DNA of 64,000 nt from Thalia democratica. Taxonomy: Eukaryota. Location of the stretch: positions 21,390,001 to 21,454,000 of the forward strand of contig OZ241826.1 in assembly GCA_965202585.1 (NCBI GenBank), written 5' to 3'. Positions 9,206 through 42,599 of this stretch are shown here, piece after piece (the stretch's first letter is position 1; each line of letters begins with the position of its first letter). The translations under genes were made by a program, and so were the position numbers. Below the pieces are notes generated by a model. The model worked only from the letters and a program-made list of their open reading frames with translations. It was not told the origin of the DNA and made no database searches.

Positions 9206-10392
9206 ACTGTCGGCTGCTTTAAAGTCACACAAAATGTTTATGAGTTTATTTTAAATATTACAATTAGTCCAAAAAAATTAATACTGTATGTTGAAAGACT
9301 AATAATATAAATAAAAATAAAGCCAAGTTAAAAAATTGTAGTAATTAAGTTTTAGTTAGTTTAAATAGTAACCAGTATAATGAATTGCATTAAGTATGTA
9401 TAATCACAATATAAACTAATGTAAGCAAACTTTTAACGAACTCCAGAGATGTTAAGTAATGAATGACAAAACGTTTATAAATGTTTCATTTACATAAACA
9501 TAATGTATTGTCAATTAAGACATTAAATTTAAAAGTGAAGACGAATTTTAACCATTTTATTGCCAAAGCTGTATTGATCTTTAACTTACTTATCTATGAC
9601 TTGCACGGTATTTTATTTGCTATTTTCATATATTTAGCTGAAAAAACACAGTTTCTTTTGTCAAGTTAAAGTTAAGTACCAACTGATCGAAATATTTCTG
9701 TGTTGGCAAGATGACGTTTACAAAACTGATAAAAAAACATAATTTATTTAGATAAGCAAACTTACTTTTCTATACAACTTTATGGCTCCGTTGTTACCAA
9801 TGATTTTTTCAATTCGATATTTTTTTTCAAATCTGCCACAACCACAACTTTTTCATTTAATTTTTGCAGTTTTATTAATTTGAAAATACTTGAATAACTT
9901 ATCAAATACAGCTTCGATTTTTTTATGAACTTTCTTTAAAAAGTTTTGTAGAAATTGTTTTGAAACTTTGATTAATACTTGCTTATTCATTACAACAAGT
10001 TTTGTCCATTGAATGCTGTATGAAGTTTAATGAAGGACAAAAAAGACGATCAAAATATTAGGTCATAGGATCTGGTGCACGAAGAACCTTTTGGTTATCG
10101 ATTCGTTCACCAAAGATAGTTTTAATGTGTTGTCGAGGACCAGGGTTACTAAATTAATACAATAGCGGTAACCGATTTAAGTTTTAAAAGTAATTAAAAC
10201 CATTTAAAGGACTTCATATAAAGAAAACTATTAAAAAAAAAGTATAGAATTACAAGTGAATTTATATATGATATATTATAAAAAATACAACTTTTGAGTT
10301 TTAAAGTAAGACAAACGTAATTTTTTCTAACTTGAGCACATAGGCTAAAATCAGAAATTTTAACTAAACAGGCAATTAAAAAAGCACACAAG

Positions 10393-11472
10393 ACTCAGTA
10401 CGAAGACGACGGAGATAAAGTCAGGCCAGATGCATAACAACCGTCAGAAAAGGTAGATGGTCGTAGAAGAAGCTGGAAAAGATGAAGGCCAACAAAGAAA
10501 ACCGAAGAAAGTATTGGATCTAGAGCACTATTCACTTAGAAGGAGCAGCTTGCAAAAAAAAAAATATTTAATCTAAATTTAAATTGGAGGTAACGTAAGA
10601 TATCTAATAGAGTGAAACATTGTTTCATGATAAAAATCTTTGAGTATAACATTTGTAAACTTAGTTTGATCAAGACAATTCGTCAATAAAAAAACTTTAC
10701 CAAAAAAAAACTGAATCAAGCTTTATAATTTATTATCAAAACTATCAAACAAGTCAAAAAATGTGTTAATAAACTTTATTATTGTAATTTTTAGTTTTTG
10801 ATGCTTTTATTAAAATTTGAATGCTGTAATAAATAGAGGTTACTAGATTAAATATTAGAAGTAACAGAAAAAGTCAATTTAGAAAACTTTATTTAAGGTA
10901 GACTATAAACAGTAAAGATTTAAAGTTTAAGTTATGTTCTGTAAGGGATATTTTGTAAAAAACACAGTTTCTGCATTTTCAGTTTGATAAAATAAGTTTT
11001 TTTAAGTTGAGCACTTAGCTTAAATTACAGTTTTTAGTAAAAACATGTAATTAAAAAGAAGACGAAGTTCAGTTAGAAGATGACAGCAAAAGAGTTAGGC
11101 CAGGTGTAGAACAATCGGGCGAAAAGGTATCTAAAAAACCGATGAAGGCCAACAAAGAAAACTTAAGAAAGTGTTGGATCTAAAGCACTATTCACTTTAA
11201 GGAAGCTGCTAGCAAAAAAAAAGTAAAGTTTTAATCTAAACTTAAGTTGAGGTAGCGTAAGATTTTTAATAGAGTGAAACATTGTTTCATAATAAAACTT
11301 TTTGAAACACAATATTTGTAAACATAATCTGGATCAAGTTAATTAGTTAATTAGCAATTTTTACAAAAATAACTAAATCAGGGTTTATAACTCATTATCA
11401 AAACTACCGAATAAAGTCAAAATATGTTAGTAAACTTTATTTTTGTCTTTTTGATTTTTCAAGCTCTTATTT
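10393..11472 (+). pseudogene. Two tandem decayed copies (period about 670 bp), probably relics of the 479-aa gene family in inverted orientation
   Basis: The duplication is clear (e.g. GATGAAGGCCAACAAAGAAAAC and TAATAGAGTGAAACATTGTTTCAT occur in both copies). Homology to the gene rests on short, ordered peptide matches only. Confidence 0.45.
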
Positions 11473-19184: not shown

Positions 19185-19320
19185 GTGACGTCACCATCTG
19201 TGTCGTAATCTCGGCATTGACCTTGCGTGACGTCACAGTAACGGAAAGCGTCCACGCGGGGGCGGTGTTGTTCGGTTTTGAAGTATAAATAGATGGTTCG
19301 CCGACCGAGAGACTTTTCTT
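19185..19320 (+). promoter_or_regulatory. Pol II promoter, probably of the NCKX gene
   Basis: CpG-rich island with two GTGACGTCAC CRE palindromes (19185-19194, 19227-19236), a GC box GGGGCGG (about 19258-19265) and TATAAATA (19284-19291). Confidence 0.65.
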
Positions 19321-21199: not shown

Positions 21200-24100
21200 G
21201 TCAGTTTGAATCTAAAGTGTTTATCTAGTTATGTTAGAAACTGTTGGCTAACAAGTACAAAAAAAATGGAAAAAATATCAGTTATTTATCTTTGAGTCAT
21301 ATATTAAAATGATTGAAAAGCTTTGTAGATAATTTCATTATATAAAACACAATGATACAAAATTTTCAATAGTTTAGATAATATGGCAAATTGTTCTTTA
21401 TTGTTTATATTTAAAAAAAATTGATCAATTGTACTGGCGCTAATGATAAACAAAAAAAAATTGTTGAAAAATGAGCTATGTTTTTAACAAGCAGTTAAAA
21501 AGTGTCGTTGAATAATTCAAGCGGCATTAATAATTCAGATTGTGTGGAACGATGCAAGTACGTTTGTAACATGCAGGTATGCATGAAGAATACCACACTT
21601 ATATATATGTATATATACATAATTATATGTGTGTGACTGACATAAACATTTACTGCAATCTATGCACAGGTGTTGCTACTGACATTGTTTTGATATATTT
21701 TCAATATTCTAGCGGACAAATACAATTTATTTGTGTATTTACTAAAAAAAACTTTTAAAATTAAGCAAGTATTTCAGTATGAAATTTGATTGTCAATTTC
21801 TAATCTTCGGTTCCTTTTGTATGGGTCGGCAAGCAGTTTCTGTGTTGCTACTTGCAACTTTCCAATCTTACAAACTTTGTACAACTATTTTTTCATTTTA
21901 GTTTATGAAATTAACTCGCGTTTTTAGCTAATTTACTGTTTTTTATTAGCTTAAAAGTTTAAAACTTCTTAAACAATTTAAATAATAATTATTAAACAAA
22001 TCACTACCGAATTAACCTTTGAATTTTAGTTTCAACTGTAGTTAGATTAGTATTAAACGTTTCCTCTATTAAACAATACAAAATTTAAACAAAAACCAGC
22101 ATTTCATAGAATTTTATTTTACGGTAAATAAGCTTATGTTATACATCTATGCACAAAATAAAGCAGGTAGTTTTAAGCAAACTTTAAAAAAATCAATTTG
22201 TAAAAAAGTTTAAATCTCTTCTTGCCTTATCTAAAAGTTTCCCTCTTTTCTTAAATTTCTAACTGACAGGCATTCTATTTTTAAAGTAGACGCTACGTCA
22301 TATAAAAGACGAAGTTTTAACAAGTTAATTAGGTTCACTTTAAAATAGGTCAGGCCAAATTAGTTTATATTCATTAAGCTGACAGTGTTATTTTCATCTA
22401 AAGTTATTTTATGTTAAGTCGTGTAATACTCCGTCTAAAAGACCAATTTCAAAAACTTAGTTATGCTAAAAAATTTGCACTAAAACTTTAGAAGCATGTA
22501 TTAAGTTCGATTAAAACTTAATTTTAAAGAGTGTCGAGTCCTTTATAAGTGAAAAGAAAAAACTTCATTCGTGTTTAAACTTCATTACTGTACGTAAAAA
22601 AACTTACATATAAATAACCTAAAAATTGAATAACTTATATAATTTCAGGTGCCGTTATTCTGCACATGTTAGGAATTTTATAATTATATTTCAATATTAA
22701 GTATAAATAAGTTGCATGTTTAGTTTAAATTTGATATTTAAACATAAAAATGTTCTTAATATATACGAATAAGAATATTTTTTTTTAGGTGCCGTTATTC
22801 TTCACATGATCGGAGTTTTGTACATGTTCATCGCTCTTGCTATCATATGTGACGAGTTCTTCGTTCCTGCTTTGGAGGTGAGTTTGTTCAGAAAGCTTTA
22901 TAAGTCACTTTTTTTTTCGTAGGTAGATTTTGTTGTTATTTCAAATCTTATTGGAGTATACTTTTTTTACTATACCAAAGCATCTTTAAAAAATCGCTAT
23001 GTTTTACGTTTGTTTGTTTTTGTTTTAAACCTAAAATATACAAATAAATGTAGTTAGAAAAAATTAAATATAAAATATTTTTTTTGAATTTAGAATTCAA
23101 TGTTAAATTGTTGTACTTTATAACTTTACCTTTTTGTTTATATTTTAAGAAGGAATGTTGCGCTAGGTAAAATAAAAACTGTTTCATTCAAAACGTTGAA
23201 GCTTCTTTTATTGTGTCCAAAAATAACCATTGGTTCATTAACAAGCTGTTTTGAACTTTCCCAAAATTAAATAAACATAAAAAACAAAAAAAAACTTTTT
23301 CGACCTCACGCATTCGCATGGTATTTCAGATAAAAGTAAAATTTAAACATTAAAAGATAATTTGGTGTGCAAACGAACAAAACTTCCTACGTCATTCGAA
23401 CTAATAATTTTACTTCTCAAGCAACCACTTTCTCCACCGCCGTCCAATTTTCACTTTTTCATCAAATTTGTTTATTTTTAAACATTTGGCCCATTTCGAC
23501 TTGAAAAGTTTCCAGCGCGGCCGAAAGAGACGATTCGCACTTTCTGGCAAACACTTTGTTAATTTCAACGGTTCAAGTAACAATGAAAGTTTTGTTTCCC
23601 AAATGTCGGAGTAAAATTTTATTTTCGGAAAGCTTACTTATGCTGAAAATTTGTGTTTGAGTTGTGTTGAATTTTAGAGGAAAATTGTTTTAAGTAGTGG
23701 TTTTTGTTCCGAAATACTTTTGATTTTCTTTGTTATACTTATTAATGTTGTTTTGAAACATTTAAATTACAGTTAAGAGACTTTTGAAAAATTTGTTGGT
23801 ATGACTAGCTGGATTTGCATTCAAGTTAAAGAAAAGCATTTTAATTACTTAGACATAATAAAAATCTCTTTGTAGAGTCGTAAATTACAATTGTTAGTCC
23901 AATATTAAAATAAAATAGAATGAATAACAAGTAAACGATGTCATTTATTACATTCAAAAAAGAAAACTTTTCAGCAAGATATAGAATAAAATCTATATAT
24001 TTAATAAACTTAACCTTCGAAGTTAGGAACAGGTTTTTTTTTCATTTTTTATAATCTTATTATTTTTACAAATCGTGTACTGTAACAAATGAAAATTCTT

Positions 24101-27100
24101 TATAATAAAATTAATTTATAACACAAGACATTTATGAGATGACAACTAGTTTCAGAAAAAAAAACCAGATACACTATGGTATAAAGCATACACAGTTTTA
24201 AACTATGATGTTTCTTATATGTCATGTAAAACTAGCAACTTCCTCCGATTTTATTCAGTTGAAAACAAGCAGACTAAACATATCCATTGATATAGAGTTA
24301 TGATATTATATACACAGTACCCATACATATTGTACACGCATTTAATATTAAAAAATATTCTAGTCAGGTAATAACAAGCAAGCTTTAGAATGACTTGATA
24401 TTTTACACTATGACATTATATTCACACATATATATTATATATTGTATTATAAGTTCTCCATAAAAAAAAATTAATCAGGTTATAACAAGCAGACTGAAGA
24501 GATCACTAGATTTTAACGATAATATACACTATCATACACCCCTAACATATTCCACACATATTTACGCACATATACATTGGTTATCATTACAAACTGTTTT
24601 GTTTAGGTGATTACGAGCAGGCTGAAGATATCACTTGATGTCGCCGATAATATTTACCATCATACACCCCTAATATATTCCACACATATTTACACACATA
24701 TACACTGGTTATTTTTACAAATTAATTTCATTCAGGTGATTACGAGCAGGCTGAAGATATCACTTGATGTCGCCGGCGCAACTTTCATGGCGGCGGGAGG
24801 ATCGGCTCCAGAATTGTTTACTTCAGTTGTCGGAGTTTTCTTCGCCAAGAGTGACGTTGGTGTGGGTAAGTAGAACACTTTTGTGTAATTTTTTACCTAA
24901 ATCAACTATTGGAGTTTTTTTTTGCTAAGAGTGATTTTGGTGTAGGTTAGTAAAAAAAGCTTATGTATATTTACAATTGTAGTTGTAGTTATTTTGCAAA
25001 AAGTGAATTCGAAGTAGGTGTGTTAGAGGGAAATGTGGTACAAAAATAATTAACACAGTATGTTGGTTATAAAATCCAAGTCTATTTTAAGACTAAAATA
25101 TTTTTCACACAACAATTGACTCTTACTTTATTTTATATATTATCGTTTATCATGGTTTATTTGTTTATATAAGCCTAATAAAACTCATAATTATTAATTA
25201 TATAAACTTGTAGACAAATTTTAAGTCAAATAACACTTAGGCTCTTTTTACGAGTAGTTATTTGAATTTTAACAAAAACAAACCAAAACACAAAGATATT
25301 TTTATTACTAAGCAAAGCTGTTTTGGGACAATTAGATATTTTTTATTATGAAAATTTTAGCCATAAAACTTTGAAATTTAAAGTTAAATATCAAGAATCT
25401 TTATTACTTACTTAATAAAGGACTGTGTTTTTGATAATAAGCAATACTATACTAAATATTGAATTTACTAAATACGATTTGAATTAAAATTTACAAAACC
25501 GTATTGAAAGCAAACTTAGTTCATTGAAACATTTAATTTAGTTGATAACTATTTTTATATCTGATAATATTTGTATCAAGTGTCTTAATTAGTATATCTC
25601 TAACCGTATAAAGTTTTACAACGTTATTGAGATTGTAGTCTTAAAAGTATATGATCCATTCAAAAAGAAATTCAGGCCGAGGATTAAACAAGGTAAAACT
25701 TCAAAAACAAAAACTGCAATTCCGTTTAACCCAGAAACCTAAAACTTTCATAATTTTTTATATGAAGTATGCAGAGTCGTGTTGCATAACGCAATGTGGC
25801 TTTGAAATCGATAACTGGCACTATGACGTCATTTGCTAATGAACCGTGCGAGTTAATTCTTGAAATCCAAGTAATAAGCCGCATAAATCTTTGTCATGCT
25901 AACCAGATTATTTCAGTACTGACAGTGGATTATGCTGCTTGAAAAAGTAATACCAGCACAGTATTATTTTTAAAATTTTAAACTAAGCTGATATCTAGGT
26001 TCTAGGTAATAGCTCGAATTTTAAGTTTTTTGCTTGTACTTACCATGTGTTTGTTATGAACTTGTTAAACTAAGTTTTTATATTTAACTAAGAGTTATTA
26101 AATATTATACTTCATTATTTAGTATATTCTACTAGACATAACGAGTTATTGTTTGTTTGAAAAAACAAACGTTTTTTATGTATTTTAGTACGCTTAATAC
26201 ACTTACAAACTGTAAATCTAGCTGAGAATAATAAACAAAAAGTCAATAATAATAACTTTATCAAATACCCATTGCATAATATTTCTGACTTAATGTAATC
26301 ACTTTATGTACAAAACTAAATCGAGCTGTGAACTAAAGGCAGGTTTACAGAAACACTACACAAAAATAAATAAGTCAGTGCATAAAGTTCATGCTTTTTT
26401 GTAACAATACTTTATAAAAAGAATGTTGCAAACTTTACTCTACATTTTCACAACTCTGACCACAATTTTTATCAAAGTTTGATAAAAGGAAGTGTAACAA
26501 AGTTCAAAAACTGTGAAAACCCTTTTGTCTATCACTGTATTAAAACTAGGGTTTCAAAGCTATATCACAAAAAAAATATTTTAATCTCTTTTAACGACTT
26601 TAATAGAAGTTTAATAAATATTTTAAATACAAGTGAATAATGTAAAGTAATAAACAACCACTAGTGAAAAAACAAATTAGTAATTATATATATACGAAAC
26701 TTAGTGTTAGAAAACAGAAACATTTTCTTCACATAAGTTTTTCCTAACCTCAACACCTTTCAGGCACAATACTCTGGTCTAAGGTGAGTTATTCGAAGCA
26801 ATTAAATAAGTTTTTTTCAAATTCAAACCAACCAACAACTTTAACTAATAAACATTTACTCCAGGAACAACCTCAAATTTATATAGTAAAACAGCAAACA
26901 CTAAAAAAGAAAACTACTAGTTCTCCATATAATTTTTATCACACCTCAACATTTCCAGGCACAATAGTTGGCAGTACAGTGCCACAGTAGACTAATATGC
27001 GTCGATTTACCAAATAGTTTTAAGTACTAACACTAGTGCTGTATATTACAACTAAACTTCTAAGAACTGAAACACTTAAAACAAAAAACAAGTATTGTGC

Positions 27101-30100
27101 ATCTACAATAGTTGGCAGTGCAATTCTCTACATTTTTTTCATACATAACTTTAAAAACACAACTAATTTACTTAGTTAAATTTCATTTCCAGGCACGATA
27201 GTCGGATCTGCGGTGTTCAACATTCTGTTCATGCATACTATATAAAGCACAACTAATTTAAGTTGAACTTCATTTCCAGGCACAGTAATAGGATCTTAAG
27301 TTATTCTTAGAACATTACAATAGAACTATACACTACAACTAGATTTAAAAACGACTTTAAACGACACATTAACTAATAAATATTTATTTTCCAGGCACGA
27401 TAGTGGGATCTGCGGTGTTCAACATTCTGTTCGTCATCGGGGCGTGCGCCCTGGTAAGCAAAAAACCGCTAGAACTAACGTGGTGGCCGCTCTTCAGGGA
27501 CTGCGTCTTCTACCTGATATGCCTAACCGCATTGATAATAACCTTCACCGACTACCAAGTCACCGTTAGTTTGTTTAAATTGTTAAAAAAACAGCCTAAG
27601 TCAAACAATGCTCAAAAGTTTAGATTTGTAAACTTTTGATGGTAATTTGCCTATTTCTAGTTTGATGATATAAACTGTGTTACTACATTTATCTAAACAT
27701 AGATTAACTGTAAATTACTACTTTTAACTTATTGATTAGATACAATTCAAATGTGTCTCTAAGATTATGTTGGAATTTGTGGAAGAAGAAAGTTTAAACA
27801 TGTAACACGGTTTAATTTTCAAAACATACATTTTATAATAAGATATTTAATTTACGTAGCTATTTAAATAATATATAAAATGTCTAAAACAAAAACAAGA
27901 CTTATAAGTTGTGTAACAGCCAAAATAGTTACTTTTAACTAAAAATTTTAAACTTAAAATTTCGTCACGACCGCGCTTTTTCTCTGAACAACACGTCACA
28001 ACATGCAAATCAGCGTTTTCGCAACAAACATTTCTCGGAAACAAAGATAATTAAATCAACCGCCTTCTGTTTTACCGAAAAAATTCTAACATTTTCCGCG
28101 CTTATCTTCCCATTTAAAATCTCTCCTCCCTCAATTATTCACGACTCGCAATGTGACGTCATAAAGAAACAGCAGCGCGTTCCAGTGCTCGTGACGTCAC
28201 AGCGAGATAGCAGAGCGGCCTGACGTGATTGAAAATAAGCTAATTGACCCTCAGCTAGCCAGTGGCACGTTGCGCAATTGACTTTTGTGGCGCTTTCGGC
28301 TTTTGGCATTTGCAAGGTGGCAGGGCAAAAGTTTACTCTGATAAGTTTGCAGTTTTTGTAATAAGACGCAAATACACTTAACCGTCGTGATATTAAAATT
28401 ATCCTTTTGTATAACGAAATAAAATCAACAATATATTTCTAAACTGAAGCTCGAAAGTTACAAAAATATTATTTTATATAATGATCGTGTTTAATAAAAG
28501 AAAGCAAGCAATATGTTTATTTGAAACAAAACGCTGTCTCAGAGTAATTTTGGCGCCAAAAAATAGAATTTAATGATTGCAAAAAGTGTAATAAAATTTA
28601 TAACATCAGCCAAGTTTCTTTGCGGTGGTTTAAGTTTTGAGAAATTTAATATTATTTATACGAGATGTTCGGTAAAGTTGCAATAATCTATACATATGGA
28701 AATAAAATGCGAACTTTTTATTCTTGTATTGCAAAAACAGCTATAAAAATCTGCCGGATAATCTAAAATGTATCCGCCAAAAAAATACAAAGAGATTATA
28801 TCTACTTTTTGCCAACTTATAGCGAATTTAAACCTCCCTAAAACAAAAGTCTTGTTCAGCTCAATTTGTTCAGTAATGTAGTTAATCGGCTTAGTGGTAA
28901 AAATTTAACGATTTAATTTTTTATTTTGTTGTTTTGATTTTTTTCCTCTGATTGCATTTTTACATAAATCATTTACATTTTAATCGTTTTTTTTTAATCT
29001 TTAAAGCTTGTTTGTTAAACTGTAGGGAAACAAAATTAAGCAAATTTCAAATACTGATGCACAACCATTATAAAATAACTTGTTTTAAATCCTTCAAAAC
29101 CAATTAGTTCTTTTTCGTAGTGCAAAAAAAATTAGATCAGAAAAAAAATGACAAAAATTTCTTTAATATATTATTAGTAGTTCTAAAAAGCTTGGTTTTG
29201 CATTCCTGGCTGCTTAAAAACAAAAATGAGTTTACTTCATTTTGGCAGGCGGGCTACTAATTATTTTTAAAAATTCATGCGATCTTTAGAAAGAGGTTCA
29301 TGAAAATAATTGTTTTCTTTTCCCTCGTACAATGTCACCTTTGAGAATGCTGAAGCTTTTGCAAAGTGCTTTGCGCCGGTCATTTGAGAGTTGCAAAGTC
29401 AATTTGTCGAGTAAATCAATCAAAAGGAGAGTTTTTATTGAAAACAGAAATTAATTGAGTTTGCATCGGATGTCAGCTTAAGTTTATAAGTTGGTTTCAT
29501 AAAACAAAAACTCAATGGTTGTCTAATTTACTTATGTAAAACTCACAGTATACTTGTTAATAAAACCTGTTCGAAAATAATTAAGTAGATTTTTAAACAA
29601 CTTAATTTTTGATTTTGATTAGTGTTTTCTTTTTGTTTTTAATCAAAATGCAGCTTTTTATTTTTAATGTTTCGAAAACTTTAATAATACTACCTAGGCA
29701 AATGTTTTTGTGCATTATAAAAGATCAACTTAAAATAAATCGGCTTTAATTAAACACGATAATACCTTTTTAGTTATCATATAAAATTTTCTATTAATTT
29801 TATTAAAACCCTACATTTTTGATATAAAAGTTTGTTATACTAACTTAATAATACTTTTACTTAAAACTGTACGTTCACTGTTACAAAAACACAAATCATG
29901 CTGTTCTATTTTCGAGTATAGGTGAGAAAATTCAGTTTAGATTGAAGTGGAAAATGTTTTTCTTTATTGTTTTCTCGTGTGACATTTTATTTTGGAGCCG
30001 TGCACGTAGGCATTATGAAACGACTTTTTTATTTGTTTTTGCACATTCGGCCAACATATCGATTTGCGAGCTAGCTATAAAAAGTTTCAAAACTTTTTTC

Positions 30101-33100
30101 TCCTCAGCAGAACAACTTTGTGTTAAGGTTTTAAAATCAATGTTACACTTTTTTAGTTTTGTTAAAACGACAAATTAAGATTATAATTCTAAGATATTAA
30201 CACTTAATTTTGTATATTCCGTTTTTAAAATGTATTTGAGTTAAATAAAAAAGTTTAACAGCTACCCTTGAGTATTTAAAATGGTTTGGATGATATAGTT
30301 TCATTTGAAAGCTATATTTAGACTAAATCTAATGCTAAAACGAACATAAAAATGTAAATAAAAACTTTTTTGCGTTCAAAATTTTTGTAAAACACCTGTC
30401 TTTAAAAACAACATACACATATTTCAATTTATTGCTAAGGAGAGTAATATAAACTCTAGTATTCTAAGATTTTGTTTACAAAACGATTAAAACTTTATTT
30501 ATAAATAGACTGTGGTTTAATTTCATAAACTGAACAAAAGTTAATACTGTTGAAATAATTTAAACAATAGTTATGTTATCTAAATTAAGTAATACGCTGA
30601 CTACTGAATGTACATGAGTTAAGTGTACAAATGACCCATTTTTAAATAGATCAAAAATTAATAGCGTTTTATTGAAAATCTAAGTAGTCATGTAAAAGGA
30701 AACTCAAACACCAAAAAATTATAATACAAATTAAAAAAAAAGTGTTTACCTATTAGGTAACTTAGCTAAATATTTTAATGATTCAGTAGCCTACTAACTA
30801 CATTTTGTATTTATTCTTTTGTTATAACAAACTAAAACACTCTTTAACAGCTGTGTGAATCCCTTATACTGATAAGTTTGTACGTGTTATACGTCATAAT
30901 CATGGCGAACAACAAGAAAATTGAAGCAAAAGTTAAAGGTATGCTCAACAAGTCTTCAAATAACAACAATGTTGTCACGAACGGAAAAATATCGCCTATG
31001 AAAGTAAGTTTGTTATTAAGATTGCTCAATTGTATTGAACTTAAATTGTATTATACGTTAAATAGATTATTTGATTTATCTAAAATAATATGAAAAAATC
31101 TCTACTTCTAAAGGAGATTAATACTGTTTATAATTAGAACAAGACTTTAATTAGTAAACTAAGTTTCTGTCAAAGACCTCATCAGTGCTTGTATAAGTCT
31201 TGTTCAAATGGAATCTAAATTGTTATTGACTGAAAAGTTTTAAAACTTTGTTTGTTGTATATAATTTTAATCATTTTTCCCATTAAAAAAAATTCGAAAA
31301 TTAGCCAATTCTACATCATAAAGCATTAAAATGATTGCATTATAATGTTTTTATCTGCTACTAATTATTACTTGTTTGAACTTGATCTGATACATCATAA
31401 AGTAGTCTATAACATTTTATTTCAAATTGTTAGGTCTTTAACGTTTACTTGTTTTGTGTTTATTTTTAATTAGTAGTTCTAACCACTTTTATCACATAGG
31501 ACACTGAAGTTTCAAAAAGCGTGCAGGCGGTTGTGAAAACTCTGAACAACCAGGATAAAGAGAAGAAGAAAAATAAAAATTCGTTCAGCATGGGAATGAT
31601 TCATCTGATCATGCACACACTGGATCCCATGACTGAAGGTAAAAATAACTTGATAAAAATAATGTTGTAACTTTAAAGGCTCTTTAAATAAAACGAACAA
31701 AAATCATGCTTTTTTACACATTATTGTATACGGGTGCATGACAATTCAAATTCATAAAAAAAATTGAAAGGGCCACTACTAAAAAAGTAATGTATATTTG
31801 TCTAATGTAAAAAATACATATGTAGGTGCTATTAATAACTGTAAGCCATTTTTTTCTTTTTGCAAAACATTAAGTATTTTTTGAGATATTGCTTAGATAA
31901 AGTTAAAAACATAGTTATTTTTAGTAGATTTAAAATATCTTAAATTATATTCAAGACTTTACAAAAAAGAAAAAAATAGCTTGTAGATATTAATAAGATA
32001 TACATATGTATTTTTAATTGTTTTCATATTTATATTATGTATTGAAATATAGATTTTTAAATATTTTTTAAGAATTTTAATTGTCGGAATTTCAGTTGTC
32101 CGAAAATGAACTGTCATGTAACCAGTGTATACATAAAGTAATAAGAAAATTAGGCTACGAAGAAAAATTTTTAAAAGAGATGTTAATGAACTATTGAGTT
32201 AGTTTAATGTTGAAGTATAGATGAACTTAATGAACAGAGCTACGTATTTTTCACATAGCAGTTTGTACGAAATGACAGCTAAATGAACCTAATAAAAATT
32301 TGCATAATTTTCGTTTTTCAACTATTTGGTAAATGTTGTCAAACAAACAGATGCCAATGGCAAGCAAGTAGCAAAGTTGTACTCGAACACAAATGGAAAA
32401 CTTTCAAACGAAACTAGTGAAACGAACAACTCTTTCAGGAATGACTTACAGTTAGTATTATTACAATTGTTAACTTAAATAGTATACTTAAAAGTTAAAA
32501 TACAAACAAAGTACTACAGTTTTTCAGTAAAATAAGATATTTTTACGGTACAATTTTTTGTTTTATATGATATATTTTATATGTATACAAAACACAGATA
32601 AAGTACTAAAACTTATTAGGCAAAAATTATTTTTCGATTGCAATTATTTCTTTTATAAGAAACAAACTACAAACTTATAGCATTAGTACAAGTTTGTTTT
32701 ACTGAAATGTGTTTGTAATTAAAGATTAGTAACAAAAACCTTGAAGTTTTTAAATGATGTATATACATAGAGCTCATTCCAAAAATTTAGAAATTAGGTA
32801 AGAGCTAGCTATTCAGATTCAATAAAATTTTTTAAGTTAAGTTTAAATCAAAATTAGACTACCAACTTTTACTTTTTTCTATTTGCAGTGGAAACGACAA
32901 TGCTTTAAGAATTCAAGAACAAAAAAAAGTCACAGCAGTCGTATGCATAGACCAAGGTTTGTTTAATTTGTTTAACCAAAAAATTGTAACAGCAAAAAAA
33001 AAAAAATTAATCTTCGTAAGCTTCAATGAATATTTATTTATTTTTACAAAAAATAAAAATTGTGAACGCTGAAATCTATTTTCATATAAATTGTCTGTTT

Positions 33101-36100
33101 AAATGCTGATGTATATAATAGCTTTGTTTTCAGAAAATGTTATTTTAGTAGTAACAGCAAGATTATTTAATAATCAAGTAAACTTAGCTGGTTTAAACAT
33201 ACATTGACAGTTTTGACTAAAAAGTTAAGTTGCTTGTATTGTTTAATTTTACAAAACAAAATAAAGTTTAAAACATTTTTATAAAATGTACAACAAAAAA
33301 TGAAGTTTATTGTCAGTATAAAAAAACTAATCTAAGATGTACGTACATTCTGATGGTAAATAATAAAAAATGCTACAAATGGGCGTCAGAAAATTACGTT
33401 ACTTTTTGCATTTCCTAAGATGTTCACGTGCTGATATTTCAACATTAATTTGTTTCAAACGTTTATTTTTGCAAACTTGCGTATGTAAAGAATTTATTTA
33501 CGATGTTTAAAAATAACAATTCAATAAAAACATTTTTATCAATTTAAAACTATAAACATACGCATGAGTAATGCTTTTAGCATGTGAAAAAATGATTATA
33601 CACGTTAACAAAGACAAATTTTAAATTGTTTATAGGTGGTATTAATTATCCTTTAAACTTGTTCTATGACATTTAAACAACTTTTTTTTGAAATAAAAAT
33701 GATTAAAAAGAATTGAAAGTTTATAATGTAAAACTTATAACTTTTATCAAAAAAATTGTAAGATAAACTCTAGGCAAACAGCAAGTTGATACACAGAACC
33801 AATTTGATTGTTTTATAAATAGAAATTTACATATTTTTTATATAATTATCAAATTATTTTAAAAAGAAGTTTAAATAAGTTATTGCCTTTACTTTGTAAC
33901 ACTTTGTCTTCAAAAACTAACAATTCAGTGTGAACTCAATTTTAAAAATTTGTACTCGCTTGGTTAAGCACTAAGTTTTTAATTTTTTTTAGTGGGAACA
34001 ATAATCAGCATTTTTTTTTAAGCTAAATACTCTACTTTATTTAAAATTATAATACATATAAACAGTATAGCAGTAAAATGACTTATGTAATGCAGTAACT
34101 AAGTTTAAAATATAAAACTTAGTTACTGCAGACTAAAGAAGTAAAATGTACAGAAAATAAAAATAAAAACAATAAATAATTTATTCTGCTATGTGTAAAC
34201 TAATATTGAAAAAAAAAGTTTTGAAATGCTACAGTTTGACAAAGTTGTTCAGTGCTTGCGCAGTTTCTTACAAAATATAAAATTTATGATACTTAAAGAA
34301 TAGTAAAAGAGCAACATTTTATAGTTTAAAAAACAATAAATACAATAAAATAATTATAAATATACTTATCATCAAAATATTAGAAACAACTTATTCGGTT
34401 TGTAAAAAAAATTGTTAACGAAACTTTTCACAATCAATTAAGTTAAAAAATTATATTAAAAAGACCAAAACGAACCAACTTAAACAACTAAATGAAACAA
34501 AACAGATGCAGAGGTGTCAGCCAATCAACAAACTTTAAACCACACTACATTGACTCTACAGGATAGACATGAAGTTAGTTATTTTTAAAACTATTCACTT
34601 TTCTAAGTTAATTAATACCAATATTTTTGTTTAATATATGCAACTAACTTTATTTTGTACTTTTGACATTTTTTTTTCTAGTTTAAACGGTAGTAAACGT
34701 AAAAGTTTCAACGGTACAAAAACAATTTTACAACTGCAACTTTGTAAACTTTACTTACAAAAAACCAAACAAATGTCATTTGTGCAGCATAAAAGCAAAC
34801 AAACGAAATCCCCCGCAAAAGAAGCAAACGCACAAACTTTTGAAATGTATTCGCTGTTGACTCCTAGAATTTTTTTTATTTATTGGCTTCGTGAATGACG
34901 CAAAACCATCGGATCAACCGGGGCCGAGCTTCGCTGAAAAACTCTAAACATTTGCTTTCCATCGCGCAAACTGCTTTCTCTTTGTATTGATTTTATCCGC
35001 GATACATCCTTTTCCACAGCAGATTATTCAAACTTTGCAAAGACGACCCTACGGTTTAAAAGACCTTTAATTCACATGTTAATTGATTCTAAAAATGTCT
35101 AATGCGAGCGCTTTAAGTAGCAGTTTAACGTCTTTTGAGGTTTTGTCGCGGTGTTTTCGTGCATGTTGGTCGACGTTAAAACTTTAAGCTTTGCGCCGGG
35201 AAAGTTTGAAAGTCTGCCGCGCACTGTGTGTAATTCTAAACATAGAACGGATTACGCTCTAATTGCATTAAAGTGGAGTTGCATTTGGAGAATCGATAAA
35301 ACGGGGGGTTGGATTTTACTTAAGTCTGTTTCGAAGAAGTTATGTGTTGTTGTTATAAACAAAGTGAATTTAGATTTATAGTTGGAAGAAAATACAAAAC
35401 ATTTCACGAAAGAATAGATAATTAATTTTCAACACAAAGTTATAATTGAAACTTTACGAAGCTTTAATTTCTTTTTTGCTTTTGAATCTTATTGAAATAA
35501 CATGCATCTGAAAAACTTCAAATTCAACTTGAAATCATGCTGCAATTTTTATTCAGTTTTGTCTGCAATGCTAGGTCTACAGCTGTTTTGACTTTAAACA
35601 GTTTTACAACATTAAAAGTTTTCAACAGTCTGTTGACGTGCTTTAGAACAATTGTTTTGTTTATTCTATTTTAATAATTAATACTATGTTTGTTAAAGGT
35701 ATTTTTTTTTAAACCTCGTAAAGTTAAAAACTATTTTGTTAACTTTTTTTTTTCTAATAGTTGACAAAAATATAGTGGAGGTTAAAAACTTTTTACAATT
35801 TTTTTTCTTAATAACAAATATTTTAAAACATGCTTAAACTATTGTTATATTAATTAACTTATTCTTCAAACAATACTTTTGTAAAACTTTAAAAATTGAA
35901 TTACTTTCTTTATTGATACAAATTTTCGAAATTGTATTCTCAAGTATTAATAATATATTAACCACGGTATCTTTTATACAGAACGGTCACACGAAACCAG
36001 ACATAAAACATCAAAACGGCATTGCAAACGGCAAAGGTAACTTTTAAAACACAACTACACTTAAACGTTATACTTGACTTAAACATCTTATAAAAAAGTC

Positions 36101-39100
36101 TTACAACGTTTAACATTATAAAAAAACTTGTGTTACATTAAGTTTGTTTAAAAATTTTCCTGATATTTTTAAACAGTTATTAAAAGTCTCAAAGTCATCA
36201 TTTTTTTAGACCACCGGCTCAGCGTTGATATCGAACTGGAGTCCAGAGTTAGTATTTTTAAGTGTTATTTTTTTTTGCAATGCTTATTGTCTGTTTATTT
36301 TGTTTATATGTTTTATATATTTACATTATTTGAGTTAAATCGTTAGTCAATTATACTTTTATTGCTATTCTAAGGGTAACAAAATACTATACATATAATT
36401 ACAGATTTTTTTTTCTTTTTAAATTGACCAACAAAAACTTTTTATAAAACTTAGTTGTTTTTAAAAACAATTTATATGTAAGTATTCACAAGTAAAACTT
36501 AGTATCTCCAATTAATTTATGAAGCTAGCAAAAATTATAAACATTTATTCTGATTTCAACGTATTAAAATCCAGTGACTATCAAAAAGTCAGATGGCTAG
36601 TTCAATCTAATTTTTTCAACCTACTAAAAAAACACGATTACCCAATCACTTTATCAAAATAATATTAATCAACCAATCAGATGGCTAGCGACTCGTCAGA
36701 GGAGGAGGAGTCGGTTCCGTTCGACATGTCCTGGCCGCAGTCCAACAAGAAGAGGTGCTTGTACTTGTTCATATTGCCGATAACGCTGCCACTGAGCCTC
36801 ACTCTCCCGGATGTGAGGAAACCCGTGAGTTTTACTTTTTGTCGAATTGTCAAATCGGACTTTATAAATACTTTTAAATATCTTTGAAATTATCAAAAAG
36901 TTTAATGTCAAAAGTTAAGGTAATTTGTCTAATTTAAATGGAAGTGAACTACAGTTATAAAGCTTTTATAGACATCGAATTTTTTTTTCCTTCGAAGTTC
37001 TATTTTAAAATATTTTTCTTCATTTAGCTTAAAACTTGCATTAAAATGAGATAAAGTCTAATTAAAACTTTTTTGTGAAAACAAAAATTCTTCCAAGATA
37101 AGTTTTACTTTTTAAAATACAAATGCATTAAATTTATCAACAGTAACACTTTTACCTCCGAATTTTTCATTTTAGTTGCTTAAAATGATTTTATCTCATC
37201 TCTTTAGTGTTAAGAATGTAATATAGAGATAAAAAGCTTTTAAGTTCGTATTTTTTTTTACTCAGTTCATTGATACTACTTACATGTAGAGTTTACTTTT
37301 TGAAGTTTTAAAGGTAATTAAAATCATCAGATAAAGTTTTTTTTTCTCAAATAGAACAAAAGTTTAAGCTAACCACTAAATACGTTCAAAGTATAAATAA
37401 AACACTTCAACATGTTTTTTGTTACTGTCCAACGCAGTCAAAGCTTATTTTTCCTTAAAAATTTTGTAAAAGGCCAAAAATTAGTAGTTATAGCTCACAT
37501 AAGTAACGCATTTTGATTTAAAGATGATTATATACTTTAAAACGTTTTGAACCTTTTAAGTTTTTTCAAGGTATTTAAAAGGAAGTTATTTAGTTTGTTA
37601 GTTTTTAAATTATTTTCAGAAGCTTAAGGAAGAAAAATAATTTTTAATGCAAGTTGATAAAACTAATTAAATGCAAAATGTTTAAAAAACTATCTAAAGT
37701 TTTGTTCAAGTATGAAATTTAAAATAAAAACACAATCCACCCACAGCTGACATAGAAAACATTCAAGTTAATGAAAACCTTGATTTTTTTCATTACACAA
37801 ACTTGACATGCAAATTCCCAAGTGCATCTGTCAAAAACACAAAACACAGGTTTTCACGCAAAAATGCAGATATTCGTTTCTACGCTGAAATTGTTTTTAC
37901 GTCAAAACAACGAGACAGCTTGTGTCAGGCTCACGTAGCCAATTTGTCAGGGGACTCCCCTCGCCTATGAATAATTCACCAGTTTGTTGTTCGGCCATAT
38001 TGTCAACGGGGCTCACGCGCATCTGAGTTGTACCTGACCGCGTATCAGGAGAGATATGTATCTTGACTTTTGATTTACGTAGCTTTCTTCTGAAAGTTAT
38101 TCCGTACTTTTAAGTATAAGTCTTCAGTCTGTTTTCGCTTTATTCATTTCTTTTCAGTTTATGTTAACTACAATGATAAAGCTTTTATTACTTTATTATT
38201 ATACTTTTTCGACAGCTAAAACCTTTGTTATCTTTGCTAATTATATTAAAAAACATTTACTTCTACTAATAACTGTAATAACATAACTGTTGAGGTTTGT
38301 GACACTTTTAAGACGAATCAACTTGTTTTAACAGAACAGAGAAAAGTATTTCTTGATAACTTTTGCAATGAGCATACTTTGGATTGGATTTTTCACTTAC
38401 TTAATGGTCTGGTGGGCTCATCAGGTTAAACTTAATTGTTTTATATTTCAAGGTTAATTTTAAAATTTTTTAGAGTGTTTTTTTAATTCACCGTTAAATG
38501 TACACGAATTACAAAAAAAAACTTGTCTAAAAACAAGGTATAAAAACATTTTTTGTCAATAGCAACTTCTTGTGTGTATATTTTATATGTAAGCAGTCAC
38601 AATGATTATATTTTATTTTGTATTTTATAATACTCACGTTTCAGCGCAACAAATACACCACTTCTACAAAACATTTAAACAACTTTTTTCTTCACAGGAA
38701 ATCACTTTAAATAAAGTTATTTTTTGTCCACTGGTAGCTTCTTCAATGAAACCTGTATATTTTTTCAAACAGGTGGTAGAAACAACCGGCATGTCGGAAA
38801 CCGTGATGGGTCTGACCTTTCTGGCGGCGGGAACTTCCGTGCCGGACCTCATCACTTCCGTCATCGTCGCCAGGAAGGGAAGAGGCGACATGGCCGTCAG
38901 CAGCTCGGTGGGCAGCAACATATTCGACGTCACCATCGGGTTAGTGTGACGTCATAAAAGGAAAAATTATGTTGATTAATACGCCGTCCTTGTACGTCGT
39001 AAGTCTATTTAACATCTAGTTCGGTGAACAACAACATATTTAACGTAAATATTTCATTAGTGTTACGTCAAAATCAGAAATGATGATAAAGAAAGATTTG

Positions 39101-42100
39101 TTGCGTTTATGTACATATTTGACGTCACTGTAAAGTGACAATGACGTATGAATAGAACACACGGTTTTGTTTGTTTTCGTAGTTATGAGGGCTTTTATGA
39201 CGTCAAATCGTTTAGAGGGTTAAAGTGTGAACCATTATCTGTGAAGTAGTAAAAAATAGTTTGGTAATACAATTTGCATATTTGACGTCAATGTAGGGTG
39301 AGAATGACCCTGCAAAACTTAAATTTTATGTAAACTCACAACAATACAGACACACGTAAACCTAAAACTTTAAGTTCAAAAATGAAAAGAAGTTATAAAA
39401 TAATATTTGTAAAAGCATATGGTTTAGTTAAACAAATACCTCGGTTTTACAAAGGTTTAAAATCAGATCACTTTTTTAAACTTAAAGTTTTAAGAATTGC
39501 TAGTTATGTCAAAAACATATTTTTAATTTATTTAAAATTCTTTACCGATCAAAATTATTTTTAACTTCGTTCGACCAAATATAGTATATAATTAACTTAA
39601 AACATTATTCTAACAAAAGTTATAAATAAAGAAAAATAATTTTATAGTCGTAAAAGATTCATAACTTTTAACAAATCCCAGAGAATTAAAATAATTAACC
39701 TCTGTTTACAACAAAATTCAAAAAATAAAAAAATTACTAGATTAATTGTTTGTAATCGTTTAGCTAATCTTTTTGAAGGTTTATTTACAGAGTTATAAAG
39801 TTACTTAAGCTTTACTATATTAAACTAAAGTATTTAACAAAACTACGATAGGCTCAAATATAATATCATTAATTCGTGTTAGCAAGGTTAAAATGATGCG
39901 TTTAGTCTTAAAAGCTCTTTTTATGAACTGATAAGATTGTTTTATAAAAGTACTACTAGTAAAAATGTATTGAAATAAATTAAGTAACAACTTACATAAA
40001 GTTTGATAAACATATATACACGTTGTAAATGAAATACAAACTTCCTATGCTAAGTTTTAAGGTGAACATGCAACCAAAGTCAACATACAGTTATACAAAG
40101 AAAAGTAAATAAACAGTTTAAAACGGTTGCACTGTTCTAAACGGTTACGCAAATTAATCAATAATTTTAACGCCGCTTCTGCATACTTACTGTTTAAATC
40201 AAATACAATTGTCTACTAATCTTGTAACGAGATTAAGCTTAAGTTAAACAAGTAACAGCTAAAAAGGGGATTTTTGTTTTCCACTTTAATTATTGATTTA
40301 TTTTCATGGTAGCAATTCCAACTGCTTCTAGCTTATTATAATCTCTTTGTGAAAGTTTTTGAAACGAGTATTTTTGTTATATTTCGTTCTTTATGGTATA
40401 CTATATAAATATTATAGTATATAATTTTTAATGTTTTCCGTTAATACTTTTACTTAAGATAAAGTGTTATGCTAAGATATGGGAAGATAAAAGAAGTTCA
40501 TTAGATCTATATTTTTGACATATTATATATTTCTTCGATATATAGTTTTCTTTTCTACCAAAATAATATAATGACTGTTTATATAAAGCTACATAAATTC
40601 TTACATATATTTTACATAAGCAAAATATTTACTTGTAAGTAACTGTAAAACATAATTAATTTAGAAAACGTCAACATCACCAAGCTAATTAATCTTCATC
40701 TTGTGTTAAAAATGTCCAACTAACGCCAATGCAAAATGACATTAATGAACAGTATTATTAGTTTTACCTGCTGTCTAGACTTTAAATTGTACATTAGGCT
40801 GTCATTCAAAATCATCTGAATATTGAAACAAATCGAACTTTTTGAAGTAAAAACGAAAAAAAAAGTATATTTAAACAAACTTATACCAGATAGAAATCTC
40901 AAACTTAAACTTTTAAGCTAAATTTTTGGAATTCACAATTTGACACTTTGGTAAGAACTTATAAAAAATAAATAAAGTTCAAAGAATTGATTTAATATTA
41001 ATTTAATTAGAAAGTAAACTGATAACAGTAGCTTTTTCATAATTTTTCTCCTTGTTAGCTGTTTTGGCTATCTAAAGGCAACGAGCATAAAGAAAACGGA
41101 AACTAAAAGTATATGGGTAATTAACTATAAAAATAAAAAAAATAATAAACGAAGGCGATTATATTTTACAATTTTGCAAATTTCATAAAAGTTAAAATGA
41201 GTTAAGGAAACTCTGCTTTGTTTTTGTGCTACATATTTAGTAAATGCTGAAAAACATTTTTAACTATTAATTTATTTTATAAGACGATAATGTTTGAAAT
41301 AAAAGTAAATTTTCACTTGATGGATAAAAATTTAAATCAAAGAAAGTTTTAGTAAACTGTATTTTTAAAGTGTACTTTATACAAAGTGTGTATTAAAACT
41401 GATAAATTATGATAAAAAGGCTAAAATCAAGAAACAATATTTTGATTAACTTTTAGTTTTTTACTGATGTATTTTATTAAAACAGATTACCACTGCCATG
41501 GGCAATGGCTACTTTGATAAGACTTGGAGACACAGTTAAGGTTAGCAAAATAGTTTTTATAAGTTTAAGTTAAATGTAATGTTAATGAGTAAAGTGCATT
41601 TACTTTTGTTTTAAGTTATATAAATATACTTTTTATACAGTAAAATGTGGTGTACTTGACTAAAACCACTTGCCTATACTATTTAACTACAGTTTTCTAT
41701 ACAACTTAGAAATACTCGGAACTTGATAAAAAATCAATTCTTATTCCTAAAATTAGGTTAATTTCATTAGCAAATGTAGTTAGTTTTAATAAAAGCAGTT
41801 TCAAAACAAAAATACACGTAAACGGCTCTGACTGACCAGATGAGCAAACTAACATACAATAAAGAAGTTTAATGATGCATACATTTTTCAAAATAGGTAG
41901 AAATTAAGGTAGACTAATATCAATCTAGTACATTATGTTTAATCTTTATTTTTTAGTTTACAACAGAGCACAACCTTTCATATTTCAAAAAGTCCTCACT
42001 AAATTTAACAAAACAGATTATAATATTTAAACAAAGCTAACTAACAGCATAAACAAACCAACATGTATTCAGAGAGTTATGACACACATTTCTTTAATAA

Positions 42101-42599
42101 CAATATAGCAAATAACAAATCAGAATGAATCAAACGGGTTTTTCTGAAATATTAAAATACTTTAAGTACTTAAAGTTAACTAACATCACCTAACTAGACC
42201 TAAAAATTCAAGATTCTCTTTTTATTAATGATAATCAAAAACTAGTACTTGACAACGAAAAATTTATAACAATTAAATACTTTTTTATTCCTATGAGGTG
42301 GAGTCGAAATTATTACATAACATAAACCTAACTAACAGCATGAAAAAACTTTCATATAATCAGAAAAATTTATGACACACATTTCTTTAACAACTTTAAT
42401 CTAGGTGGAATCAAACGGGTTGTTCTGCAGCGTGCTCCTCCTGGCAATAATGCTGTTCATGGTGGTCACCTCCATCGCGTGCAACTCCTGGAAGATGACC
42501 GCCAAGCTGGGAGTCGGTCTCTTCCTCCTCTACCTCCTCTTCCTCGTCTCCTCCCTCCTTCTCGAGCTCGGCTACGTCGCGTGCCCCGTGCAGAGTTGA
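21064..42599 (+). CDS. slc24a2-like: K+-dependent Na+/Ca2+ exchanger (SLC24/NCKX, NCKX1/2-like), 16 coding exons, 598 aa
   Basis: join(21064-21199,22789-22877,24736-24865,27395-27564,30851-31003,31500-31638,32351-32450,32889-32956,34506-34573,35982-36036,36210-36247,36681-36824,38335-38424,38773-38939,41486-41540,42405-42599) = 1797 nt. All introns are GT-AG, phases are consistent and there is no internal stop. Motifs: alpha-1 [12 protein letters not shown], alpha-2 [18 protein letters not shown] (the Asp corresponds to the K+-dependence residue of NCKX2) and HTLDP. Exons 7-11 are supported only by splice signals and frame continuity. Confidence 0.93.
22789..22877 (+). CDS. NCKX exon 2
   Basis: [30 protein letters not shown]. 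Confidence 0.95.
24250..25020 (+). repeat. Splice-junction tandem repeats around NCKX exon 3
   Basis: Acceptor plus exon-start copies begin at 24259, 24368, 24479 and 24607. Exon-end plus donor copies end at 24945 and 25017. Confidence 0.92.
24736..24865 (+). CDS. NCKX exon 3 (alpha-1)
   Basis: [44 protein letters not shown]. Confidence 0.95.
26740..27394 (+). repeat. Splice-junction tandem repeats upstream of NCKX exon 4
   Basis: Copies of (TTTCCAG)|GCAC.ATAGT.GG at 26764, 26865, 26959, 27103, 27193 and 27280. Confidence 0.9.
27395..27564 (+). CDS. NCKX exon 4
   Basis: [40 protein letters not shown]... Confidence 0.95.
28100..28330. promoter_or_regulatory. Intronic CpG-rich regulatory island
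   Basis: TGACGTCA at 28154 and 28192, a half site at about 28220, and C/EBP-type TTGCGCAA at 28270-28277. Confidence 0.5.
30851..31003 (+). CDS. NCKX exon 5
   Basis: [23 protein letters not shown]...ISPMK. Confidence 0.9.
31500..31638 (+). CDS. NCKX exon 6
   Basis: DTEVSKS...[19 protein letters not shown]. Confidence 0.9.
32351..36247 (+). CDS. NCKX cytosolic-loop exons 7-11 (32351-32450, 32889-32956, 34506-34573, 35982-36036, 36210-36247)
   Basis: Short open exons with AG/GT signals and phases 1-2, 2-1, 1-0, 0-1, 1-0 that bridge exon 6 to exon 12. No motif support. Confidence 0.65.
36681..36824 (+). CDS. NCKX exon 12
   Basis: [19 protein letters not shown]...[12 protein letters not shown]. 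Confidence 0.93.
38335..38424 (+). CDS. NCKX exon 13
   Basis: [30 protein letters not shown]. Confidence 0.93.
38773..38939 (+). CDS. NCKX exon 14 (alpha-2)
   Basis: [56 protein letters not shown]. Confidence 0.96.
38940..39305 (+). repeat. Splice-junction repeats downstream of NCKX exon 14
   Basis: Exon-end plus donor-region copies end at 39055, 39134 and 39297. Confidence 0.8.
41486..41540 (+). CDS. NCKX exon 15
   Basis: [19 protein letters not shown]. Confidence 0.9.
42040..42404 (+). repeat. Splice-junction repeats upstream of NCKX exon 16
   Basis: CTAACTAACAGCAT...TTATGACACACATTTCTTTAA...AG|..GAATCAAACGGGTT is duplicated at a period of about 281 bp. A further copy AG|GTGGAGTCG is at 42298. 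Confidence 0.85.
42405..42599 (+). CDS. NCKX exon 16 (terminal)
   Basis: [13 protein letters not shown]...[12 protein letters not shown]; AATAAA at 42902. Confidence 0.95.
   Translation: MESNGLFCSVLLLAIMLFMVVTSIACNSWKMTAKLGVGLFLLYLLFLVSSLLLELGYVACPVQS

Follow-up and report, generated by a model that had tools for sequence, protein, structure and literature searches.

Partial copies of splice junctions in the introns of an NCKX-type exchanger gene of Thalia democratica: probable relics of small local duplications

The closest described system is the minisatellite in intron 7 of human F7, a variable number tandem repeat (VNTR) of 37 bp whose first unit spans the boundary of exon 7 and intron 7 and whose pseudo-donors are silent (PMC1557585). 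Internal gene duplications and tandem genomic duplications have otherwise been discussed mainly as a source of intron gain (review PMC3443670; Hellsten et al. 2011, PMC3265369), where Gao and Lynch 2009 is also cited. Here, a stretch of 64,000 nucleotides from the 802 Mb genome of Thalia democratica (G000:C1:21390001-21454000), hereafter the window, was analyzed. Its + strand carries a gene for an NCKX-type Na/Ca-K exchanger, and the introns of this gene contain short partial copies of its own splice junctions. These copies are probably relics of small local duplications that straddled the junctions, and the codon pattern of their divergence is explicable without a function.

The likeness to the F7 minisatellite lies in a direct tandem array that is seeded at a splice junction and leaves exon-edge pseudo-sites only in the adjacent intron. 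In contrast to F7, where one donor boundary is concerned, the NCKX copies are associated with acceptors as well as donors, and a single gene has them at several of its junctions. Their units of 80-300 nt are irregular and strongly decayed, whereas the F7 repeat is a homogeneous VNTR. The initial annotation of the window knew of no named feature class for such copies, for which the F7 intron-7 minisatellite is a described precedent; a genome-wide description of such junction copies was not found in full-text literature searches.

With the tandem duplications discussed for intron gain, the NCKX copies share the small size, the location within a gene and the doubling of splice-site-like sequence, so that the outcome depends on which copy the spliceosome chooses. 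They differ because the duplicated pieces span an existing junction and lengthen an existing intron, with no new intron and no coding change. Tandem mutually exclusive exons likewise arise by local direct duplication of exon sequence and its splice site, whereas the NCKX copies hold only 18-51 nt of exon, one splice site and a broken frame. Recursive splice sites are juxtaposed 3' and 5' splice sites in long introns. The NCKX acceptor copies of exons starting with GT recreate this AG/GT arrangement (the slash marks the junction), but the introns are short and the motif would be a by-product of copying.

Junction copies and their topology

The exon limits of the NCKX gene were derived from frame continuity and from tblastn, for which library homologues and a relative's metatranscriptome cDNA of 2.3 kb (L001) served as queries; the alpha-2 repeat was matched in the PDB and in the protein library. 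Eleven exons were placed (Table 1), excluding the small loop exons at 31.6-36.7 kb, and the labels E12-E16 follow the numbering of the initial annotation. The window has a GC content of about 27%, with GC-richer exons, and the introns carrying copies are 2-3 kb long. Each junction was aligned to its adjacent intron by means of a query that held 40 nt of intron and at most 60 nt of exon; for the null, 200 samples were drawn from introns not adjacent to it, and their best scores were 12-16 at the copy-bearing junctions.

Strong direct partial copies were detected at 6 of the 20 testable junctions, with scores well above the null, and the E12 acceptor has one further weak copy. The total amounts to 17-19 copies, every one of them in the adjacent intron and 80-630 nt away from the junction, and each copied piece consists of the splice signal and 20-50 nt of the exon edge. 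This confirms the initial annotation, which had described about 19 short copies flanking E2, E3, E4, E12, E14 and E16, with the reservation that the copies are strong at all of these exons except E12. The exon part of the nearest E3 acceptor copy is identical at 40/40 positions, and the E4 copy at 27193 is identical to the exon at 37/38. The E14 donor copy with a score of 16 is not significant by itself (p_null 0.21); the two weaker E14 donor copies are 84% alike to each other and are centred on the motif TGACGTCA. In the alignments to the adjacent introns, 13 of the 20 testable junctions had no copy, among them the donors of E1, E2 and E4, both junctions of E5, E6, E13 and E15, and the acceptor of E14. 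Tandem Repeats Finder (TRF), applied to the 64 kb, reported a 128-nt unit at the E3 acceptor (85%) as the sole long-period tandem repeat and picks up the youngest array only.

The sample used for the assembly contains two haplotypes at ~43x each, which are ~10-12% apart in introns with many indels, and a second organism (B) shows about the same divergence (~10-12%) as these haplotypes do. Contigs for the E3, E4 and E14-donor arrays were compared; the E16 copies were not covered. Contigs from two runs of the assembly's own sample span these copies with zero differences. In contigs of organism B, the E3 acceptor and donor copies are present, part of the E4 array (26787-27072) is spanned by one contig, and the E14 donor copies 1 and 2 are nearly unchanged with copy 3 being ~14% different. 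Since the copies recur in independent-run contigs and in organism B, the main arrays are not an assembly artefact. In one organism B contig, 38957 is connected directly to 39091, and E14 copy 1 would thereby be absent; this join was not counted as a presence/absence polymorphism because its shorter flank is only 30 nt.

A close NCKX paralogue lies on the same chromosome, 68 Mb away at C1:89.78 Mb (G000:C1:89776001-89806000, loci L003-L005). It has the same exon structure with exons that are 80-86% identical, and its introns are unalignable. The paralogue has copies of its own at the E3 donor (+220), the E4 acceptor (-208 and -360) and the E14 acceptor (-170), and weaker ones at the E2 donor and the E5 acceptor. 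Arrays at the E4 acceptor and the E3 donor are therefore common to both paralogues, including one pair of copies at -202 and -208.

When both paralogues were pooled, a direct copy with a score of at least 20 was found on the junction's own intron side in 11/40 junctions, compared with 0/36 in the intron at the opposite end of the exon and 0/40 in inverted orientation at the same score (Fisher 1e-7). Whole-genome searches, made for the E3 and E4 acceptor junctions only, returned nothing beyond the junction itself, its local copies and the exon of the paralogue. For this reason, a transposable element or introner-type dispersed repeat was rejected. The direct, right-side topology reads as the signature of a local head-to-tail duplication across the junction, and neither a mobile element nor a templated insertion in either orientation would fit copies that are only direct, on the right side and local.

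A junction-anchored profile shows that the recognisable core comprises ~10 nt of splice signal and 20-50 nt of exon, and that the likeness on the intron side fades fast. The alignments continue across the cag or gt signal and include 18-51 nt of exon, and 65% of positions match in the 10 nt of intron next to the junction. Only in the youngest units, at the E3 acceptor, are the intron tails still ~88% alike; the E16 copy has a partial unit-wide similarity, and the other copies are ~50-nt patches with unalignable spacers between them. Identity to the exon drops with distance in the E3 acceptor, E3 donor and paralogue E4 arrays and is roughly flat past the first copy in the E14 donor array. An exception is the E4 array of the window, in which the nearest copy (27281) is more decayed than the next one (27193).

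Table 1. Positions of the NCKX exons and of the junction copies in the window
Feature	Position	Strand	Basis or description
NCKX exon E1	ends 21199	+	tblastn, frame continuity
E2 acceptor copy	22628-22682	+	140 nt upstream; cag and 34 nt of exon start, 5 mismatches; score 30 vs null maximum 14
NCKX exon E2	22789-22877	+	tblastn, frame continuity
E3 acceptor array, four copies	24248-24646	+	exon parts from ~24259, 24369, 24479, 24607; scores in descending order 60, 26, 24, 24
NCKX exon E3 (alpha-1 repeat)	24736-24865	+	tblastn, frame continuity
E3 donor copies, two	24902-25019	+	at +80 and +152; scores 28 and ~12
E4 acceptor array, five to six copies	26758-27296	+	exon parts from ~26764, 26866, 26959, 27103, 27193, 27281; scores in descending order 48, 19, 18, 16, 16, 13
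NCKX exon E4	27395-27564	+	tblastn, frame continuity
NCKX exon E5	30851-31003	+	tblastn, frame continuity
NCKX exon E6	31500-31638	+	tblastn, frame continuity
E12 acceptor copy, weak	36580-36600	+	21 nt; score 15 vs null maximum 14
NCKX exon E12	36681-36824	+	tblastn, frame continuity
NCKX exon E13	38335-38424	+	tblastn, frame continuity
NCKX exon E14 (alpha-2 repeat)	38773-38939	+	tblastn, frame continuity, protein matches
E14 donor copies, three	39018-39331	+	39018-39080 robust; 39113-39157 and 39277-39331 weaker; scores 27, 17, 16
NCKX exon E15	41486-41540	+	tblastn, frame continuity
E16 acceptor copy	42017-42146	+	~96 nt of intron end and 22 nt of exon start, 291 nt upstream; scores 23+18 as one unit
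E16 acceptor second copy, short	42296-42308	+	score 9
NCKX exon E16 (last)	42405-42599	+	tblastn, frame continuity

Codon-structured divergence and earlier exon states

The divergence between copies and exons was evaluated for 23 copies in 11 arrays. Mismatches occur at 31/226 first (14%), 20/230 second (9%) and 82/223 third codon positions (37%), and 60 of the single-difference codons are synonymous versus 23 with a replacement (72% synonymous). The initial annotation had stated that the differences lie mostly at the third position, which holds, and this excess persists after correction for base composition and CpG. At G/C sites the mismatch rates at positions 1, 2 and 3 are 19%, 19% and 44%, and at A/T sites they are 9%, 2% and 22%. 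Among CpG members, 6/35, 2/20 and 30/56 differ at the three positions. CpG decay was rejected as the cause since the third-position member of the CpGs differs in 30/56 cases and its partner in 8/55. The excess is accordingly due neither to composition nor to methylation.

Using a substitution spectrum derived from the differences to organism B, predictions were compared with the observed ratio of position-3 to position-1/2 mismatches of 3.29 (cluster bootstrap over arrays 2.53-5.04). If nothing but AT-biased decay acts on the copy, the expected ratio is 1.13, and this model was rejected; the earlier suggestion that AT-biased mutation hits GC-rich third positions therefore explains little. A neutral copy next to a constrained exon that changes synonymously at an equal rate predicts 2.03, a value that is insufficient alone, with 0/5,000 bootstraps at or below it. 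The predicted ratio reaches 2.7-3.3 after adding a synonymous diversity of 0.08-0.16, and this diversity of 8-16% is a rough estimate from few exon sites and the weakest link of the argument. The allelic exon differences found are all synonymous or at third positions, namely 5 in 130 nt of E3 and, for E14, the 3 listed of 4 in 75 nt. As exon alleles would differ only synonymously, position 3 would gain approximately the synonymous diversity and positions 1-2 would gain nothing.

The residual excess is purely at the third position and is most extreme in the youngest copies, where the eight youngest differ from the exon at 0/68, 1/70 and 12/67 of positions 1, 2 and 3. The assumption that neutral intronic decay should not spare positions 1-2, on which the initial annotation had relied, is flawed: these positions are not spared, since their difference of 11% compares with 23% in the intron parts that were aligned, and roughly such a halving is expected where the copy can change freely and the exon cannot. 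The cDNA of the relative (L001) fails as an outgroup for these differences, as its third positions are saturated, with 25% identity whether or not the copy differs.

Some copies retain earlier codon states of their exon. The older E4 copies (27103 and 26959) read GGC AGT, while the exon of the window and its two nearest copies read GGA TCT; in the paralogue, the E4 exon and its copies read GGA AGC. As the older copies carry AGT and the paralogue has the AGC type of serine codon, the older copies predate the serine codon switch in E4. Furthermore, the E4 copies of the paralogue keep ATA where its exon now reads ATC, and ATA matches the exon of the window. The proposal that the copies form a dated record of earlier exon states is thus supported by the serine codons and by an identity that mostly falls with distance, but the order is not strict, as 27281 and 27193 show. 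A general drift in the GC content at third positions (GC3), which had been considered possible, is not demonstrable because the third positions of the relative are saturated, although its coding GC3 of 0.33 is much lower than the 0.51-0.86 in the copy-bearing exons.

The initial annotation had also seen residues in the copies that are nearer to vertebrate NCKX2. This was not borne out for the E14 copies 2 and 3, which read Val where the exon reads Ile, since the two are duplicates of each other and both the paralogue and the distant relative share the Ile of the exon. The Val is best read as one chance two-step change.

Local duplications at junctions and elsewhere

In the window, a score of at least 24 was reached by 5/20 junction queries and by 2/174 intron windows, both of the latter being copy-to-copy matches, and this comparison is biased by choice because the window was selected for its copies. 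With the same score and a copy within 1.5 kb, the paralogue yielded 3/20 junctions versus 12/228 of its intron windows (p = 0.11). Five myosin genes (loci L022-L034) were identified with PF00063; one of their 60 junction sides has a clear copy, which lies at +124 from a donor of the C2:53.88 Mb gene, and their exon limits are approximate since they follow hidden Markov model (HMM) matches, so that weak copies could be missed. In four arbitrary 40-kb blocks (160 kb), 3.4% of the 100-nt windows have a local direct repeat with a score of at least 24 within 1.5 kb. Local inverted repeats are also common, with a ratio of direct to inverted of ~2.4:1.

The junctions chosen beforehand add up to 4/80, much the same as random windows (52/1532, p = 0.36) and intron windows of the paralogue (12/228, p = 1.0). 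The genome is rich in small local duplications and junctions receive roughly their share of them, and a targeting of junctions is not supported. The idea of junctions as a special substrate, which the initial annotation had put forward, is not supported in the genes chosen beforehand, with 4/80 compared to 3-5% of ordinary windows. In these genes, copies are no more frequent at junctions than elsewhere, an outcome that the initial annotation had named as a refutation; it concerns the claim of junction specificity only, and the observation of the copies itself stands.

Several further repeats and GC-rich segments were noted. The GC3 of the myosin genes is bimodal, with 0.63 in two genes and 0.26-0.27 in three, and the sequence between their exon matches has 22-27% GC in all five. 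In the arbitrary blocks from chromosome 1, a minisatellite-like repeat family with units of ~50-105 nt recurs (L010 5910-6229, L018 2515-2710 and L014 ~8199-8350). Upstream of the NCKX gene, the window contains a 671-bp tandem duplication that is ~73% identical (10161-10811 and 10832-11471) and holds GC-richer, exon-like stretches; it could be a whole-exon duplication in another transcript. A direct repeat at 8786-8877 and 9110-9202, 72% identical and displaced by 324 nt, falls on two segments of higher GC content and may be a duplicated exon or an exon-edge copy of a neighbouring gene on the - strand.

The palindrome TGACGTCA, the core of the cyclic AMP (cAMP)-response element, occurs 10 times in the window compared with 0.28 expected, at 19186-19235, 25824, 28154-28199, 38947-39290 and 42674. 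Pairs of it lie in GC-rich islands upstream of the NCKX gene and within intron 4, and four sites are found within 340 nt just past the E14 donor, two of them inside the weaker E14 copies. The island in intron 4 (28101-28350, up to 52% GC, with two of the sites) could be an internal promoter or enhancer, or part of another gene. In the cDNA L001, an in-frame stop and ~60 nt (879-942) part two open frames in the region of the cytoplasmic loop, and this interruption resembles a retained small intron or an alternative exon.

Origin of the copies

The feature is real, and its mechanism is most likely an ordinary one, in which local duplication is combined with selection on one of the two copies only and with a high level of polymorphism. 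Small duplications of neighbouring sequence, with units of ~80-300 bp and some of them repeated into arrays, would by chance have had ends that straddle a splice junction. The copy still joined to the rest of the exon would stay the working junction, and the other copy would be stranded in the adjacent intron as a truncated pseudo-junction, decaying by AT-biased substitutions and indels. In arrays, the older units would then lie farther from the exon. Such duplications would stand out at junctions because purifying selection freezes the GC-rich copy in the exon, in an AT-rich and very heterozygous genome. The divergence between copy and exon would have three sources: unconstrained decay of the copy at every codon position, changes in the exon that are solely synonymous, and standing synonymous differences between the exon allele from which the copy was made and the allele that has since been recombined beside it. 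In the long coalescent of a hyperdiverse population, recombination over 100-300 bp would re-pair the copy with other exon alleles.

Several observations weigh against this explanation. With the paralogue as the outgroup, most third-position differences fall on the lineage of the copy (60 vs 10; 60 of 82). This polarisation was not taken at face value, as standing polymorphism or parallel change would give the same signal, and the polymorphism term covers the excess on the copy lineage only if the synonymous diversity estimated from few sites is about right. Some copies, namely the E14 and E4 copies of the paralogue and the E16 unit, are ~50-nt patches with unrelated spacers, for which later indels, short-patch copying or gene conversion must be invoked. 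The exon parts are all 18-51 nt long, a narrower range than uniform breakpoints would give, so that a selective filter or a mechanism with a preferred length is needed. The arrays shared by both paralogues at the E4 acceptor and the E3 donor hint at a site preference or at concerted evolution, and the concentration of copies at junctions within the window is a further counterpoint, though the window was picked for it. Finally, the fresher state of the E4 copy at 27193 compared with the nearer 27281 is left unexplained. The narrow lengths, the patches, the freshness of 27193 and the junctions shared with the paralogue keep polar exchange, conversion and junction breaks alive as a rival to chance duplication.

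According to this rival, which appears unlikely, certain genes, possibly ones whose third positions are rich in GC, have junctions that act as hotspots of repeated breaks or unequal exchange, and the arrays are polar minisatellites that are seeded by the exon, grow next to it and are refreshed by exchange or gene conversion. A route to small tandem duplications by meiotic double cutting and end joining between chromatids has been documented in mouse (bioRxiv 10.1101/2020.06.23.168138). A hotspot would account for the runs of four to six copies at the acceptors of E3 and E4 when most junctions lack any, for the copying of both paralogues at the same two junctions, and for the order of 27193 and 27281. 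In the nearest copies, the exon parts are kept far better than the intron parts (40/40 versus a difference of 12%, and 37/38 versus ~35%), but this is also expected from one-sided constraint together with polymorphism and indels in the intron, and a homology of 40 nt is short for gene conversion. The difference between the paralogue (3/20) and the myosins (1/60) suggests heterogeneity between genes, and copy-bearing exons tend to have a higher GC3 (one-sided p = 0.06), with the sole myosin copy lying in a gene with a GC3 of 0.63; the GC3 association is confounded with detectability. The lack of enrichment at the junctions of the genes chosen beforehand speaks against hotspots.

Rather unlikely as well is the reading in which some junctions are true sites of recurrent duplication, with the selected exon as a master copy that buds or refreshes intron copies through polar unequal exchange, short-patch conversion or meiotic breaks tied to GC-rich third positions. 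The arrays would in this case act as recursive or decoy sites and belong to a genome-wide class of exon-seeded minisatellites.

It is improbable that the copies are kept for RNA processing, be it as putative decoys, as recursive splice sites or as elements that regulate splicing. The AG and a pyrimidine tract survive in nearly all acceptor copies and the GT in several donor copies, which, like the match of the 10 intron-side nt, would suit such a role, but this retention of AG or GT is partly forced by the anchoring of the alignments. The form cag/GT or gag/GT is present in the E2 copy, in 3/4 E3 copies, of which one reads cag/GTAATA, and in 1/2 E16 copies, and the oldest E4 copy has GTGAGT 20 nt further on. 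AG/GT appears in most of the E2, E3 and E16 copies because those exons begin with GT, and this form could make an accidental use of a copy harmless. Against a role in RNA processing are the introns of just 2-3 kb, the steady decay with distance and the loss of splice signals, with E14 copy 1 being without GT, and the codon periodicity, which is not expected of a function at the RNA level.

Translation of the copies, now or in the past, as alternative ends of exons or as relics of mutually exclusive exons is very improbable. The mismatch rank of position 3 > 1 > 2 and the 72% share of synonymous differences would be in line with translation, and tblastn with the protein of the relative gives weak matches to several copies. 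However, the similarity breaks off after 20-50 nt, and stops are reached in the copies of E2 and E16 and in the E4 copy at 27281. An in-frame TAG and a deletion of 1 nt interrupt one of the E3 copies, most offsets are not divisible by three, and neither the full exon length nor a pair of splice sites is present in any copy. The translation part of the functional hypothesis in the initial annotation is contradicted by these stops and frameshifts and by the missing partner splice site. Assembly artefacts or chance likeness in low-complexity sequence, for which the AT-rich introns and the chance scores of 16-20 with long queries could speak, are hardly credible in view of the matching contigs from independent runs, the E3 and E14 copies in organism B and scores far above the non-adjacent-intron, wrong-side and inverted nulls, and this explanation is refuted for the main copies and possible only for E12, the short second E16 copy, 26838-26868 and 26758-26786.

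Under the preferred explanation by small local duplications, the copies would be by-products of ordinary mutation and not a new functional class. They also call for caution before codon periodicity is taken as a sign of coding, since non-coding DNA of a highly polymorphic species can acquire such a pattern with no translation involved. If the reading as hotspots or gene conversion were true, it would be a new way for introns to grow from their edges, and the master-copy reading, if true, would describe a minisatellite class with a built-in fossil record of codon states. As relics of duplication, the copies may serve as natural test cases for how the spliceosome ignores near-perfect pseudo-sites nearby. 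Each copy would be a dated, unselected snapshot of an exon edge, and its comparison with the exon would separate free decay from synonymous change and recover earlier codon states.

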